A stretch of DNA of 64,000 nt from Salisapilia sapeloensis CBS 127946 (GCA_023334545.1 JAADVB010000054.1:1-64000); one strand, 5' to 3'; positions 24,801 through 30,265 are shown, numbered from the stretch's first letter. Made by a program: numbers and translations. Notes: generated by a model not told the origin, from the sequence alone.

Positions 24801-25987
24801 ATGTGAACCTTTGTTGCTTTTACAGGAGCAGCCTCGACTTCTTCTTCACTATTTTCACGATGATCTTCAAATGTCTCGGTGATCTTATGAAGTCCCACGA
24901 GTGTGCTAGGGCGCTGTCCGCTTTCGGTAATATTTAGAAAAGGAAGTTCATTTTCTTCTTTCTGTTCATCTACTTTGAAGTCTTCTCCTCCTGAATCGTC
25001 TTCTTTAAGCTCTGCAGCAACAGCGGCTTGTAAAGGCTCATACAACGAAGATGTCTGGTCGAGATTTTGCAGCAAATTGGACATGCTTGATGAAGGAAAG
25101 CGCTCTACAAGTGCATGTGAAACTTTGCTCGCGCTTTCCTGGTCAAGATCTACGGACATTTTGGTGAAAAACTCGATGTACTGAGACTGTGGTAGATCCC
25201 AGAAATGAAGTAAAGTATCCACTATCCGCTGATTGACTTCATCAATTTTGACTGTCTTCTGACTACGTAGCTTTTCATTTTCATCTAATAAGGCTTTGCT
25301 TGCTTTTTCCATGCGCTGGCAGTATATATAGTACGGAATTCGCTTTAAGGATCCATCATTATCGTCTTTGCACACTGTGAGCGCATAATCATCAGGGTGA
25401 TCGTCCATGCTTACATCCTTGTACAGTAGCATTGCAAGCAAGTCTCGAAGTGAATGCAGTGTGTCTGCGTAGCGAAAGAACCTCTTTCCATCACTAGCAT
25501 CACTATCTGAAATGACGAGGGGTAGACTTCGAAAGAGCGTATCGAGGACTTCCCATACCAAGTCACTTTCATCTGCATTCCCGAGCGTACCTTTCCACTG
25601 CCGAAAGAACTCTTTCAGAATGGCATCCCCTCGATCACTTGTAAATAATTGCCATACACTGTCCTTTTGTTGCCGCCTTGGTGACTTTAGAGGTGATAGC
25701 TGTTCCTCCTCGACTTTCGAGGATGGTAACAAACTTTCCAAGTTACCACCTCGCGAGGAGATGGATGCGTCTCGTAAAAGTTGATGAAAGTGCAGTAGCT
25801 CGTGGTGGAAATTGGATGAAATCTGCGTTTGCATCGGCAAGTGAAGCGCGTATGGTTCAATCCGCTGCAGTTTCACTTGTCGCGGAGACAGACGCGGGTG
25901 ACGACGAGGTCGTGGTCCATCTGCACCTCGTCTTGGATCCCGAGGCGATAGGGCGCCAAGCCCATCTTTCGTTGGGAATGAGGCCAT
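21872..25987 (-). CDS. Large acidic/coiled-coil EF-hand protein (about 1370 aa)
   Basis: Single ORF; canonical EF-hand loop DVNGDGSLEYSEF and a second degenerate one (PSISFDQFL); acidic tract; first ATG at 25987. Confidence 0.7.
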   Translation of the reverse strand: MASFPTKDGLGALSPRDPRRGADGPRPRRHPRLSPRQVKLQRIEPYALHLPMQTQISSNFHHELLHFHQLLRDASISSRGGNLESLLPSSKVEEEQLSPLKSPRRQQKDSVWQLFTSDRGDAILKEFFRQWKGTLGNADESDLVWEVLDTLFRSLPLVISDSDASDGKRFFRYADTLHSLRDLLAMLLYKDVSMDDHPDDYALTVCKDDNDGSLKRIPYYIYCQRMEKASKALLDENEKLRSQKTVKIDEVNQRIVDTLLHFWDLPQSQYIEFFTKMSVDLDQESASKVSHALVERFPSSSMSNLLQNLDQTSSLYEPLQAAVAAELKEDDSGGEDFKVDEQKEENELPFLNITESGQRPSTLVGLHKITETFEDHRENSEEEVEAAPVKATKVHILERGREPAPHHFHSVNIQRGRSYSDFAVHPTMRPEVQVEEDPALVAVKNRDIAKEKLQKVLMEFVEHDATDKSLQVQNGITPATFEAAWDLIELLDGKQPRKKEIAAIHSVVHVAPVETSAPPPEPSYHDDEVSIPIHEDEGKTESREVLAAALGDNLTPEQQFAMKMDQLHSQLTNLNNYKIYEMSTEVVSAIYKRMPNLTRLFTNVMEKTYEAAGLSKNAARKKTYTMVVAAEEAESLRLSVNDNELVNGVKYLLVRMSEAVKSLVPLMELHGQHDPFALAKFANEMHATGSSQCHPSSKKQSRKEKEEEESKKFIKNLDSLTHNDQMEIIPDMILATCQEFALLKQKNPQRLAICDEGDDVYDNDEEDGDEDEEDKSDTRKNDLVAASCEEFWRKASHVSVRSPLANKVDVSESSPEQEEDDERIEKPVRRRRRKANRKDREELATLDDEGRASSGQRGGSNLMLQQFKQGAGSRQVKLFNVGLLLRLVDQLYREFYEGVLSTPQYGSKRMNFSEFVYDWHIRRYGLKTLAQQHAFKFIHSLRKYDQKVYQCDLCLRFLGIQNALGYHELKFVLGLLANWSSGSFSGESKYRVEHVPRQFKLRVAYAYSSVHDALTERFGVYFRTSEYLHNQLKDHALPDETEYVLEREVLQIALVHWAEHRRKVEHLLEAIYNAGDVNGDGSLEYSEFTTVMYQLSPSIDDKFITRIFNATYDRKDPPSISFDQFLDVILLEKVLNTTRSISNSLAEKRAISQGMTSDTFKSVNDEDDEMYQFRLLQETWENDSASVKLALSSITHKPTATSISFRISFLTQLLEKRVDSKTAWLCHRQIMREISKYQDLTETQIVTMQQKEESFKRAVMAVRSVQRLERLSMLVPSSLEPPMEERQSQFSQVVEDRLVRGRKQSTLADIAALEEELREQFIDKADESSIEDYKQALDKLQRMSKEREEKLVEEDVMDSITEDEDPIKQID

Positions 25988-26178
25988 CGAACTCAAAACC
26001 TGGAGCTGGAATAGAAATGAAGTCGAGTCTAAATATATCTTGGAGTCTATCTAGTAGCTCTAGCAACTAACGCATCCATGATTCGTACTTTCGTATCTTT
26101 ATTTCTTCATGTTAAGTCTTGAAACAAATGACCTAGCTTTGTACAGCAGTCCTACGACGTGGCTAAGCTAGACCTCTC

Positions 26179-27348
26179 TCATGCAAAGGACGGCGAACGA
26201 GTCTTCTTGCGAGTCAATGTCTTGTCTGTGACCGTCCAGTTGCCCATGAGACATAGGTAGTCTCCTTCAAATGTCGTGCGTGTGTACCCTCCTTTCCGCT
26301 TGTACGAGATATGCTCATCAATGGCAAGAATGTCATTCGAAAACAAATCGTTCTTCTCATTCTCGAGCGCATGACGATCAGCGTACACACTGACCGTGTA
26401 TCGAGATGGACGGAAGCATCGCAAAACATTTTTCAAAAGAGATTCGTAGCGTCGAAGCCTAGCATTCGTCTCGAAACTGACATAGCTACAGTGACTCTCC
26501 GGTGTGATGTGGATCGTGTAGTATGCGTCGAATAAGATGCCGTTCATCGAGTATCCACAAGGGTCAAAGGCAAAGTCATCCAGGATAGCACCAGGGACGA
26601 GGTCGCGGATGCCACTCTTGATGGTCATCTGACGAGAGGTTAGGCCCGGGTTTTGTTCCTTGGAAAACTGTTCCGACACACTCGGGTGCATATCCTGCAT
26701 CAGAACGTGCAGCGTCGATTCGTCCGCTGGGCCTCGCTTTATCGCAGGCATTCCGAGCGGAAGCATCGAAGGCGATTCATGGCTTTCGCTGTCCCAGACG
26801 TAGAGGTACCAGTGGTCACGGTTCAATGGTCCAAGGACGTGGGCTGAACCATCCGGAAAGAAGGAATTCAAGTAACCCACTTCCGTTTCGAAGGACGTGT
26901 GTGGGAACTCTTGGCCTTCCGGGAAGGTGTAGTTCTTCCTACTGTAGCTCACCCATTCAATGGACATGCCGAGAGACTTGGCATACTCTTGGATGAACGG
27001 AATTGTCTTGAGTAACGTCGTCGTACCGCACGTCTTTATCACGACCTTGTGTGCGTAGACGAAGAGACTGGATTCCGACAGGACATACGCGTCGATGTGA
27101 GCATTCTCCACTTTCGACAGGATCGTGCACTGAGCAGCATCTAGCATGGCATCGATATCTTCTCGTCCGACAGCTCGGAAACCGAGTTCATGACCGACAC
27201 CGCGCTTAAAGTCGATTTCAAGGTTCTTTTCCGGCCCTTCAAAGCTCGTGAGCACGGACGTCGTATCGGACGCTTCGGACTCTGTCGAAAAGTTGTCTTC
27301 ATCCGAGACAGGAGGCAGTGTAATAGCTCCTGGGAATTTATTCACCAT
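26179..27348 (-). CDS. SAMDC: S-adenosylmethionine decarboxylase proenzyme
   Basis: FEGPEKNLEIDF, autocleavage motif YVLSESSLFV, KTCGTT, FDPCGYSMN, TIHITPE, YVSFETN. Confidence 0.97.
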   Translation of the reverse strand: MVNKFPGAITLPPVSDEDNFSTESEASDTTSVLTSFEGPEKNLEIDFKRGVGHELGFRAVGREDIDAMLDAAQCTILSKVENAHIDAYVLSESSLFVYAHKVVIKTCGTTTLLKTIPFIQEYAKSLGMSIEWVSYSRKNYTFPEGQEFPHTSFETEVGYLNSFFPDGSAHVLGPLNRDHWYLYVWDSESHESPSMLPLGMPAIKRGPADESTLHVLMQDMHPSVSEQFSKEQNPGLTSRQMTIKSGIRDLVPGAILDDFAFDPCGYSMNGILFDAYYTIHITPESHCSYVSFETNARLRRYESLLKNVLRCFRPSRYTVSVYADRHALENEKNDLFSNDILAIDEHISYKRKGGYTRTTFEGDYLCLMGNWTVTDKTLTRKKTRSPSFA

Positions 27349-27366
27349 CTTGCGTCTAGTCGAGTG

Positions 27367-27474
27367 TTAGGCTGGGTCGTCGCAAGCGCCAATATAGAAA
27401 AAGCCAGTGAAGATCGTAGTCTGGTCAACGATGTCGTCGGTTGCGGAGTCCCAGACAAGTAGTGCCAGCGGCAT
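27367..27474 (-). promoter_or_regulatory. Candidate upstream ORF (35 aa) in the SAMDC leader
   Basis: ATG 27474 to TAA 27369-27367 encodes MPLALLVWDSATDDIVDQTTIFTGFFYIGACDDPA; ends 18 nt before the SAMDC ATG; only minus-strand ATG between 27749 and 27349. Confidence 0.55.
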
Positions 27475-27835
27475 GAACGAGGAAACAGAAAAGCGGCTAG
27501 TACGCCGAGGTACGTGAACAAAAGCTGAGGCTCGGATGGCTTTCAGCTAATGGGATGCTAGTACGAGCACAATGCAATTATTCGACAGCCAACAAAAAGG
27601 AACAGCCGAGATAAAGACAAATGCTCTAGGATCTACAAGGACAGACAAAAAATCCAAAGTAGAAGGATTCGAGTGATTGGTAGGCCGAAAGTATCGAAGT
27701 GAGACGAATTTCTAGATTTCAAGATTTGTCCTGTTGTGGCTTTTGCCACCATGCAAATTTGACTGGACTTTCGTATACCGTGACAGCTGGATCTTCAAGC
27801 GTCATCATCTTATTCCGAAGGGTTGTGAACAGTCA

Positions 27836-29119
27836 CTACTTGGCAGCGATTGCGGTTGGATCGAGCGGGAGGCAATGGATGCTCTCAGTCGTGTCTTCTC
27901 CACGCTGGTCGTGGTTGATGAAATGCGGATGGTCACATACGGCTGGTGTCGATAGTTTTAACGTGTAATCACAAGTCTGACCTTCTTTCACGGATAAAAT
28001 GTGCTGCGTCGACCCGCCTGGACTGCAGTAGTAGTACACGGTAGTTTTACGTTGGGTGACGACGTCGAATTCTCTGCACGGAGTACCTTTTGTATACACT
28101 TCAACAAAAGCCGGTCTGGAAACGTCGTGCGTGGCGTCAATGTGTTCCATCACCAAGGCTGCTCCATTGGCCTCCATCTGCGTATTCTTTTGCTGGTCGA
28201 ACGTCCCGAGGTTATAGTCTGTTACGATACGCCCATTTCCGTTGCGATGGTATTGTCGGACGCCTTGACCGATACAGAACTCGTACGTCCACCATCCGTC
28301 ATTCCGTTTCGAGCAGACATGGGCATCTGCTAATGGTTTTAAGAGAGAACGTACGGGGAAGAGCGTGTGATCCTTTAATCCAGCAAATTTGGCATCACAA
28401 AAGACATGGGAGGTTACAAGGAATGCTGAAATGGATCTTGTTCCATCCATTTCAACGGCAGCAACGGCATTGTCCGATTGCACGTCACTGCACATGAATT
28501 GAACACGAATGTGGTGGTCATCTTCGACAAACGTTTGGGTAAAGAGAGGCCTAGAAAGGCTCTCAAGTCTACTTTTGATCGTAGGATCGATGAACTCGTT
28601 GTAACTTACAGCGGTCTCGATGCCATCGGATGTGAATTTTCCGAGAGAATGGACGGTGTGGCTGGATGGTTGCTTGCTGCCTACACCAGAGACAGCACTG
28701 GAGCCGTAGTTGTACGGCTTAAGATTGATCTTTCGAAGTAACATAGTCGGACAGACCTCGTATACCCAATTACCTTGGACATCAGCGTACTGCACACACC
28801 TCGGCATGATTTTACCGACGGCCGTACGTGCAAACGAGACAAACGCACGGTCCTCTTCTTCCTGCAGCTTCTTTGTTCGAGCTTCCTCTGATGACATACT
28901 ATCTTCCTCGGACTGTATGGACGGAAAGAAGCATTCAAACTGCTGTCCAGACGCGAGCGTCATGATTTCAGGCTGCAATTCACCCCAATTCGGCGGCTGC
29001 ACGAAGCTCTCGCGATCAGGGTGCATCTCCACGACATACGAGAGGTCATTCCCACTTAAAGCATGTACATACGAAGCTCCAGCGACGAGCAAAGCGGCAT
29101 AACGTAGTACATGCATCAT
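27836..29119 (-). CDS. ER lectin with two MRH/PRKCSH domains (OS-9/ERLEC1-like)
   Basis: Signal peptide MMHVLRYAALLVAGASYVHA; WVYEVCP and GWWTYEFCIGQGVRQYH; GTPC...QRKTTVYYYC...EGQTCDYTLKLSTPAVC. Confidence 0.85.
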   Translation of the reverse strand: MMHVLRYAALLVAGASYVHALSGNDLSYVVEMHPDRESFVQPPNWGELQPEIMTLASGQQFECFFPSIQSEEDSMSSEEARTKKLQEEEDRAFVSFARTAVGKIMPRCVQYADVQGNWVYEVCPTMLLRKINLKPYNYGSSAVSGVGSKQPSSHTVHSLGKFTSDGIETAVSYNEFIDPTIKSRLESLSRPLFTQTFVEDDHHIRVQFMCSDVQSDNAVAAVEMDGTRSISAFLVTSHVFCDAKFAGLKDHTLFPVRSLLKPLADAHVCSKRNDGWWTYEFCIGQGVRQYHRNGNGRIVTDYNLGTFDQQKNTQMEANGAALVMEHIDATHDVSRPAFVEVYTKGTPCREFDVVTQRKTTVYYYCSPGGSTQHILSVKEGQTCDYTLKLSTPAVCDHPHFINHDQRGEDTTESIHCLPLDPTAIAAK

Positions 29120-29203
29120 CCTCGGCTTCCGCGTTTCGAAACGTGTATTGGTGTAGATTTGCAAGACATTAACTTCAATTACAAATGTGCATTTAGAAAC
29201 AAA

Positions 29204-30265
29204 ATGAATTGGATCGTGATCGTGGCTGTGGCGAGTGCTGCTGTATCTGCGACTGCAGCAGTAGTACTAGCACGAAATGTAGCTAGGCATAGACGTAGCG
29301 ATGTACTATGCCAAGTCCCCCTTTCAACGTACTTGAGATTTGTCTTGGCGACTAAATTGCAAGCCTTCGTGATTCATCTCTCGGGCGTAGCGAGTGAGTG
29401 GGAGCATTTGCCTCCTGTCACTCGACTTTCACCTGAAGTTGTTCGTGTCATGGGACATAACCCTGGAAGAATGACTTTACGCGGTACGAACACGTACCTC
29501 ATCGGAACTGGATCCACTCGTTTGCTCATTGACGCTGGCGACGGGAACGATGCTTTCATCTCGTCACTCCAGCAAGCAGTCAAGGCCGAAGGCGTGACGG
29601 AGATCTCGGACTTGCTCCTTACCCACAGCCATCTTGACCATATCGGTGGCATCTTGCGTATCAAGGAGATGTACCCTGCCATGCGTATTTGGAAGTGCTT
29701 CCCAGGACAAGAGCTTTCGAACGCTATCAAGGTGTCTTCATCGGATTGTCAGGCTCTAGGTGTCCAAGAGGTGGTCGACGGACAAGAATTTACCGCCCAA
29801 GGAGCTCATCTGAAAGCTGTTTACACGCCAGGACATTGTGTGGATCACATGTGCTTCCTCTTTGGCTCTTACCTCTTCTCTGGCGACTGCGTTCTTGGCT
29901 ATGGCAGTGCTGTCTTTGACTCGCTACATGACCTGATGGCGTCTTTGAGAAAGCTACTGGAGTATAAACCGACAGTCGTGTATCCAGGACATGGTCCTGT
30001 GGTATCTGATGCCCAGAGCAAGGTACAAGAATACCTCTCTCATCGAGATGAGCGAGAGCAGCAGATCTTGACAGCATTGGATCAATCGATTGGAAAGACT
30101 GTCGACCGGATTGTACAAGACGTGTATGGTGATTTGAATTGGTTACTCCGCATCGGTGCGAAACGCAGTGTTCGACAGCATTTGGATAAATTGCAAGTGG
30201 AGAAGCGAGTGGCACGAACGGAAGCAAGTATGTTTTCGAACAGCAAATATCACTTGATTATATAA
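29204..30265 (+). CDS. LACTB2: LACTB2-like metallo-beta-lactamase with N-terminal membrane anchor
   Basis: NPGRMTLRGTNTYLIG, THSHLDHIGG, TPGHCVDH, FSGDCVLG, YPGHGP, YLSHRDEREQQI. Confidence 0.85.
   Translation: MNWIVIVAVASAAVSATAAVVLARNVARHRRSDVLCQVPLSTYLRFVLATKLQAFVIHLSGVASEWEHLPPVTRLSPEVVRVMGHNPGRMTLRGTNTYLIGTGSTRLLIDAGDGNDAFISSLQQAVKAEGVTEISDLLLTHSHLDHIGGILRIKEMYPAMRIWKCFPGQELSNAIKVSSSDCQALGVQEVVDGQEFTAQGAHLKAVYTPGHCVDHMCFLFGSYLFSGDCVLGYGSAVFDSLHDLMASLRKLLEYKPTVVYPGHGPVVSDAQSKVQEYLSHRDEREQQILTALDQSIGKTVDRIVQDVYGDLNWLLRIGAKRSVRQHLDKLQVEKRVARTEASMFSNSKYHLII

Follow-up and report, generated by a model that had tools for sequence, protein, structure and literature searches.

The leader of the S-adenosylmethionine decarboxylase (SAMDC) mRNA of the oomycete Salisapilia sapeloensis contains a 35-codon upstream open reading frame (uORF) which, on the evidence of its conservation in relatives, is with high confidence a cis-acting conserved-peptide uORF. 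It was identified on the minus strand of the window, the whole stretch of 64,000 nucleotides analysed here. By analogy to its plant and mammalian counterparts, the uORF is very probably a translational brake on SAMDC synthesis. The full model, in which polyamines stall ribosomes on the uORF, is carried over from the same systems and is considered likely.

SAMDC is rate-limiting for the synthesis of spermidine and spermine, and in mammals and plants its control by uORFs is a textbook example of translation that senses a metabolite. Oomycetes include major pathogens of crops and animals, and to our knowledge almost no translational control elements have been described for them. By sequence, a deeply conserved uORF of the arrest type is present in oomycetes on SAMDC, a gene under uORF control elsewhere, and it provides a testable example of nascent-peptide sensing in these organisms. 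The uORF belongs to a known kind, the SAMDC uORFs including those of diatoms; the oomycete version is apparently new.

The SAMDC locus and its transcript

The following features were assigned in the window:

26179..27348, minus strand: SAMDC proenzyme coding sequence, 389 aa, intronless (Pfam PF01536, E = 1.3e-105; RNA-like contigs colinear with the genome)
27345..27351, minus strand: SAMDC start codon in the strong context AAG AUG G (the N-terminus MVNxFPxxIxLP aligns with orthologues)
27349..27366, minus strand: 18-nt spacer from the uORF stop to the SAMDC AUG, in frame and stop-free (from the sequence)
27349..27689, minus strand: 5' leader of the SAMDC mRNA, ~330-341 nt, 5' end approximate (from the ends of RNA-like contigs)
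27365..27369, minus strand: uORF stop UAA followed by CA, conserved termination context (TAA-CA in 9/9 oomycetes)
27367..27438, minus strand: C-terminal core DDIVDQTTIFTGFFYIGACDDPA plus stop, putative ribosome-arrest segment (13-17 invariant columns)
27367..27474, minus strand: conserved-peptide uORF, 35 codons plus TAA (from the sequence; orthologous uORFs precede SAMDC in all oomycetes fetched)
27471..27477, minus strand: weak-context uORF start codon (uAUG), UUC AUG C, with U at -3 and C at +4 (U-3/C+4 in 9/9 oomycetes and in Chattonella)
27544..27546, minus strand: in-frame CUG, first codon past the upstream stop (role as a start unsupported, the extension being conserved neither in length nor in sequence)
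27836..29164, minus strand: PRKCSH/OS-9-like upstream neighbour, given for context and outside the element (Pfam PF07915, E = 2e-17)

The uORF encodes the peptide MPLALLVWDSATDDIVDQTTIFTGFFYIGACDDPA, with the ATG at 27474-27472 and the TAA at 27369-27367. The initial annotation had described 35 codons with a weak start and a Pro-Ala-stop end, placed 18 nt before and in frame with a strong SAMDC AUG, and the sequence agrees with this in each part; six sense codons lie between the uORF stop and the SAMDC AUG. The downstream reading frame, named there as SAMDC, was confirmed as such by its Pfam match, and the closest database relatives of the protein are the Pythium/Globisporangium-type oomycete enzymes with ~72% identity. 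The uAUG had also been described as the sole AUG in the ~400 nt before SAMDC, and the next ATG upstream is indeed found at -404, beyond the mRNA. In the 341-nt leader, one AUG compares to a mean of 4.1 in shuffled sequences (P(<=1) = 0.07), a depletion which, taken alone, is only suggestive. That the uORF is more than a chance occurrence follows from the comparative evidence, its conservation across relatives, and not from AUG depletion. Upstream of the AUG, the frame of the uORF stays open for 24 codons, to the CTG at 27546. The stop codon of the upstream gene (27836) and the SAMDC ATG are separated by 487 nt.

Four small assemblies were placed on the region 25400-29300, three of which (X2, X3 and X5) are from the window organism, while X6 is from a relative with ~96% identity. 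That these assemblies represent RNA is a guess, which is backed only by the sites at which the contigs break and by steps in depth: the contigs end in the gaps between genes at 26058-26081 and about 29129-29207, and the depth of X5 changes stepwise between genes (171, 27 and 17). In X5, SAMDC is covered by a contig of its own at 26082-27689, and the upstream gene by another (27774-28887). In X6, the SAMDC contig covers 26161-27677 and carries 8 additional unmatched letters. The 5' ends of these two contigs are independent and only a few nucleotides apart, and they are contig ends, not mapped transcription starts. They place the 5' end of the SAMDC mRNA approximately at 27677-27689, with a leader of ~330-341 nt in which both the uAUG and the CUG are included. 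The initial annotation had named a transcription start downstream of 27474 and an intron as two ways in which the uORF could be lost from the mRNA. The RNA-like contig ends lie upstream of the uAUG, and no joints are present inside 26082-27689, so that no intron takes out the uORF. For another oomycete, five Logan transcript contigs (L005-L009) have leaders of 265-395 nt, with the orthologous uORF included. The gene models are hereby corrected, in that the long "intergenic" spacer represents a leader, predicted to be a regulated one.

In X2 and X3, SAMDC and the upstream gene share one contig, since little sequence separates the 3' end of the latter (about 27705-27774) from the 5' end of SAMDC. 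Across 27690-27835, the two genes are thereby in one contig in 2/3 assemblies, and overlapping or read-through transcription is possible in this stretch. At 27853-27913, at the 3' end of the PRKCSH/OS-9-like gene, one X6 contig of low depth skips 59 nt. A PRKCSH-like gene on the same strand upstream of SAMDC is also present in Globisporangium splendens, Pythium brassicae and Phytophthora sojae, with spacers between the two genes of about 1.2-1.6 kb, far above the 487 nt in the window.

Conservation of the uORF in oomycetes and other stramenopiles

SAMDC loci were fetched from two Logan genomes (L001 and L003), Globisporangium splendens (L002), Pythium brassicae (L004), Phytophthora sojae (L010), Albugo candida (L011) and Saprolegnia diclina (L012), together with the transcripts L005-L009. 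In 8/8 other oomycetes fetched, the orthologous reading frame is the last or only uORF before SAMDC and has a length of 33-42 codons. The peptides have a common end, ..(D)DIVDxTxI(F/Y)TGFFY(I/V)GACDEPA-stop, and Pro-Ala-stop is found in every oomycete uORF compared, in line with the conserved P-x-stop end that the initial annotation had proposed to look for. The N-terminal third of the peptide and the length of the uORF vary among oomycetes. A word search with the peptide alignment, for which the 42-aa Saprolegnia peptide was used first, identified eleven further peptides among tiny-gene calls in Logan, JGI and ENA assemblies, and all matches to the uORF peptide were of the oomycete type.

Over the last 16 codons of the nine species, variable sites are distributed over codon positions 1, 2 and 3 as 2/4/13. 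When the window was compared to each other species over the last 22 codons, 8-11 synonymous and 2-7 non-synonymous codon differences were identified, and the median pairwise dN/dS is 0.086 (NG86; dS is often saturated). Going by this codon pattern, purifying selection is acting on the uORF peptide and not on the RNA. The main reading of the initial annotation, a conserved regulatory uORF with a weak uAUG, a strong main AUG and a Pro-x-stop end, is strongly supported by this conservation, both in the presence of the peptide in relatives and in selection at the codon level.

The nucleotides around the start and stop codons are conserved as well. T at -3 and C at +4 of the uAUG are found in 9/9 oomycetes, the sequence being TTC ATG C except that TTC is replaced by TTA in Albugo and by TGG in Saprolegnia, and the stop codon is TAA followed by CA in 9/9. 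The spacer between the uORF stop and the SAMDC AUG ranges from 11 to 189 nt, and the frame of the uORF relative to SAMDC in the nine oomycetes is 0, 2, 1, 0, 1, 0, 1, 0 and 2. The in-frame arrangement pointed out initially is thus true for the window but not conserved, and it is a coincidence, since spacer and frame vary in the relatives. A similar result was obtained for the open frame up to the CTG at 27546, which is present in the window, but whose extension is not conserved: in Saprolegnia, Chattonella and L001, in-frame stops are located 2-11 codons before the uAUG. A CUG-initiated N-terminal extension was rejected as a conserved feature, as the upstream open frame varies. In the Albugo candida assembly (GCA_040437565.1, L011:1577-2035), the uORF and the first ~11 SAMDC codons are present twice, with a run of N between the copies; this is probably a scaffolding duplication of the assembly and not biology.

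Among other stramenopiles, the SAMDC transcript of the raphidophyte Chattonella subsalsa contains the uORF MRTRTSLGELEVDDIIDSSFMHLQFLYIAVDCDPS-stop, with the start TTA ATG C and the end TGA CA. JGI metagenome and metatranscriptome contigs were scanned with a stramenopile SAMDC alignment, which gave 80 further loci. The types of uORF were assigned to taxa by a quick SAMDC tree and by cluster names (for Chattonella subsalsa, by cluster names). In the 80 JGI leaders, recurrent terminal uORFs of four kinds were identified:

Raphidophyte type, ..VEDIVDxxFMHxKFLxIAxxxxPS: SAMDC clade with Chattonella and Heterosigma
Diatom type, ..DIVFVxPILLAVPSAKSYPS: one locus matches Skeletonema sp. RCC1716 exactly, and other loci group with S. 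marinoi and S. potamos
Pedinella-like type, ..IVDDTSIYTGEPVVATILEVA: SAMDC clade with Pedinella
Chrysophyte-like type, ..SDIS: SAMDC clade with Chromulina

An HMM built only from oomycete peptides was used to search 1426 ORF segments, which had been extracted from the non-oomycete leaders on both strands. Matches were obtained for the Pedinella-like type (E = 1.5e-4), L024 (E = 0.006), Chattonella (E = 0.08) and two other raphidophyte-type loci (E = 0.25 and 0.5), with the top reverse-strand control at E = 0.95. In the oomycete, raphidophyte and Pedinella-like peptides, the 30 residues before the stop form an ungapped alignment with the pattern [DY][IL][VI]D-x-[TS]-x-x-[FYH]...[DE]-x-[AS]-stop, and the uORFs of Chattonella and the Pedinella-like type have their start and stop contexts in common with the oomycete uORF. 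The types differ in the middle of the peptide, which is FTGFFYIGAC in oomycetes versus HLQFLYIAVD and TGEPVVATIL in the raphidophyte and Pedinella-like types. The Pedinella-like uORFs end in E-x-A-stop and are devoid of the penultimate Pro of the oomycete type; to judge from this end, the penultimate Pro may be dispensable. In the literature searched, no earlier description of raphidophyte or Pedinella-like SAMDC uORFs was found.

For the diatom and chrysophyte-like peptides, no significant similarity to the oomycete peptide was detected by HMM searches. The diatom profile matched the oomycete peptides at E>=0.1, the iterated oomycete profile matched the diatom peptide at E = 20, and a search with the diatom-type profile gave nothing significant against the oomycete, raphidophyte and Pedinella-like peptides. 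What the diatom and oomycete types share is limited to their nucleotide contexts, their position and a P-S/A end.

The nucleotide signature extends across the classes. Within the 38 classified stramenopile SAMDC uORFs, T is present at -3 in 29 (A in only 1) and C at +4 in 32, compared to 28% and 32% of control uORFs, respectively. The stop codon is followed by CA in 34/38, versus 9/129 (7%) of the other uORF stops in the same leaders. The window uORF (TTC ATG C; TAA CA) fits this signature. In all stramenopile classes compared, no further uORF separates the conserved one from SAMDC, although its peptide changes in sequence from class to class. The occurrence of stop-CA and U-3/C+4 throughout the classes suggests that initiation and termination contexts are integral to the putative sensor, and these signatures constitute a small new observation.

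Since homologous uORFs are present in ochrophyte leaders and the start and stop signature is common to both groups, the oomycete uORF is, by these comparisons, the form taken in one lineage by an element that dates back at least to the split of oomycetes and ochrophytes. The uORF had initially been regarded as independently evolved in oomycetes. In the narrow sense of an oomycete invention, this view has to be given up, as related uORFs are present in Chattonella and in the Pedinella-like type, and diatom SAMDC uORFs with a penultimate Pro are already listed in PMC2811004. A broader scenario, which we regard as speculative and rather doubtful, would make all stramenopile SAMDC uORFs (the oomycete, raphidophyte, dictyochophyte-like, diatom and chrysophyte-like types) one ancient module, with invariants at the nucleotide level (the weak U-3/C+4 uAUG and the weak stop-CA) and an arrest peptide that is replaced from class to class. 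In this scenario, the module and the small uORF of plant and algal SAMDC would be homologues, so that polyamine feedback by a uORF with stalling at termination would be older than the supergroup split or would have been carried with a gene of the algal endosymbiont.

Some additional observations were made in these leaders. In the Chattonella subsalsa transcript (L015:136-144), a two-codon ORF, ATG TAT TGA, precedes the AUG of the conserved uORF by 12 nt; this ORF is reminiscent of the 'tiny uORF' of plants and was seen in this one species only. In Ectocarpus siliculosus (L013:2615-2773), an upstream ORF ends in ..WLPACKQPS-stop, resembling the plant ..C[AS][RK][KR]PS end; Pfam and HMM searches gave no support for this ORF, and 5'-UTR introns are possible at this locus. 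In the upstream region of L024 (1501-2586), the Pedinella-like 'IVDESNIYCGEPEE' segment continues without the expected stop; the contig may be genomic, with its leader interrupted by an intron.

Proposed mechanism and alternative readings

In the proposed model, most scanning ribosomes (43S complexes) would leak past the weak uAUG and initiate at the strong SAMDC AUG. The ribosomes which do translate the uORF would have their exit tunnel occupied by the nascent peptide ..IFTGFFYIGACD(E/D)PA. At high polyamine levels, termination would be slow at the weak UAA-CA, with Pro as the penultimate residue and peptidyl-tRNA-Ala in the P site. C at +4 and the CA and CAR stop contexts are associated with inefficient termination, and both the penultimate Pro and the +4 C/CA context would favour stalling. 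A stalled ribosome would sit 18 nt before the SAMDC AUG and obstruct the scanning ribosomes that follow; it may additionally increase the use of the uAUG by queuing, and it may set off decay of the mRNA. As net outcome, the synthesis of SAMDC would drop. The model predicts that mutation of the uAUG, the frame, the Pro or the stop context would each alter the effect. The mechanism is carried over by analogy, because the uORF peptide is without detectable similarity to the plant and mammalian SAMDC uORFs.

The conservation evidence fits equally well to a peptide-dependent brake of another kind, which would be constitutive, would respond to a different ligand such as SAM, decarboxylated SAM or methionine status, or would set the basal output or the stability of the mRNA. 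Nothing in the sequence names the ligand, and the peptide is unrelated to the polyamine-responsive peptides of plants and mammals. However, every SAMDC uORF studied so far is polyamine-responsive according to PMC2811004, and such a brake of another kind is considered unlikely. Product feedback is the simplest expectation, since SAMDC catalyses the committed step for spermidine and spermine. The strong purifying selection on the peptide and its hydrophobic core, IFTGFFYIGA, would also be expected if the 35-aa product acted in trans in a bicistronic arrangement, as a small hydrophobic membrane peptide or a partner of SAMDC. This micropeptide is improbable: conservation is confined to the last ~22 residues and the stop context, which is the pattern of class I arrest uORFs, whereas the N-terminal part and the length vary. 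Moreover, the uORF remains the last one in stramenopile SAMDC leaders despite the turnover of the peptide between classes, the conserved weak start makes little sense for a peptide needed in quantity, and no Pfam family was matched at E<=10.

Read-through of UAA-CA would fuse the uORF peptide to SAMDC and generate an N-terminally extended isoform. In the window, uORF and SAMDC have the same frame and the six spacer codons include no stop, and stop-CA resembles known leaky contexts; however, all three frames and spacers of widely different length occur in the nine oomycetes, and a read-through fusion therefore cannot be the conserved function, which makes this reading very improbable. Short ORFs often arise by chance and the leader is only marginally depleted of AUG, so that a chance ORF had to be considered, together with conservation caused by an RNA structure or a DNA element. 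These readings are ruled out by the codon-position pattern and the dN/dS given above, and their probability is close to nil: the variation is mainly at third positions with invariant amino acids, the start and stop codons are kept in all species, and the leader gave no Rfam match. A cis-acting brake responding to polyamines is the preferred reading.

Comparison with known SAMDC uORFs and other arrest peptides

SAMDC uORFs have been compiled by Ivanov, Atkins & Michael (2010; PMC2811004), including those of diatom AdoMetDC and of other algae, and were reported there to have arisen at least three times. A penultimate Pro is described in this paper as general in SAMDC uORF peptides, with the exception of vertebrates and sea squirts. 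Polyamine-responsive stalling on SAMDC uORFs and the penultimate Pro have precedent in PMC2811004 and PMC12758896. Oomycetes are not mentioned in the main text of PMC2811004, and full-text literature searches gave no description of an oomycete SAMDC uORF.

Among the known uORFs, that of diatoms is similar to the window uORF in being the last uORF of the SAMDC leader, in its length of 25-42 codons and in its stramenopile host, as well as in the U-3/C+4 start, the stop-CA and the penultimate Pro followed by a small last residue. The two differ in the spacing from DIV to the stop, which is 2 residues shorter in diatoms.

The small uORF of plants (PF08132, CPuORF homology group 3) likewise lies in the leader of SAMDC; it belongs to the class I CPuORFs, and its C-terminus is conserved. 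In the window uORF, this trait has its counterpart in the last ~22 residues, on which purifying selection acts between distantly related species. The plant peptide ends in ..C[AVS][RK][KR]PS-stop and has the penultimate Pro in common with the oomycete uORF. Without statistical support, two further resemblances can be pointed out: an acidic-hydrophobic motif 21-25 residues before the stop, IEDV in plants and DDIV in oomycetes, and a Cys five or six residues before the stop combined with a Pro-small-stop end in both. For the plant small uORF, polyamine-responsive stalling at the stop codon has been published (cited in PMC9305500 and PMC2811004). It consists of 48-55 codons and overlaps a tiny uORF, in contrast to the 35 codons and the single AUG of the window leader, in whose 341 nt no tiny uORF occluding the uORF AUG is present. 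At the one plant locus examined (Arabidopsis hybrid), the start is ATTATG|ATGG with the tiny uORF overlapping, and the stop is TGA-GT.

With respect to sequence, the assignment of the window uORF to PF08132 fails. The window, Saprolegnia, Albugo, Chattonella and diatom-type peptides gave no match to PF08132 at E<=10, while the Arabidopsis control was at E = 1.8e-27, and no meaningful match of the uORF peptides to other Pfam families was found at the same threshold. Fifteen plant leader peptides from the database were aligned for comparison. Comparing the stramenopile and angiosperm leader-peptide alignments by hhalign gave a probability of 0.2% and no similarity. The plant HMM detected nothing above reverse-strand noise in the 1426 stramenopile leader ORF segments, and its matches to the oomycete peptides were at E>=1.3. 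A look-alike SAMDC cluster, which is dominated by Bacillariophyta and contains PF08132 in 22% of its members, was dropped as a link to plants, as the scanned diatom-type uORF peptides are without PF08132.

The MAGDIS uORF of vertebrate AMD1 is, like the window uORF, a single uORF in a SAMDC leader with a weak uAUG that permits leaky scanning. It differs in having 6 codons instead of 35, in lacking a penultimate Pro and in showing no sequence similarity to the window uORF. Its stalling at termination is peptide-dependent and stabilised by polyamines (PMC2811004).

The arrangement proposed for the window uORF also has parallels outside SAMDC. In the fungal arginine attenuator peptide and the gp48 uORF2 of hCMV, the C-terminal part of the nascent peptide is conserved, and ribosomes arrested at the stop codon hold back those that are scanning. 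Both systems differ from the window uORF in gene, ligand and sequence and serve as a working analogy only. Among the few arrest peptides of eukaryotes, ..IFTGFFYIGACDEPA-stop adds a peptide sequence class, for which arrest is so far putative.
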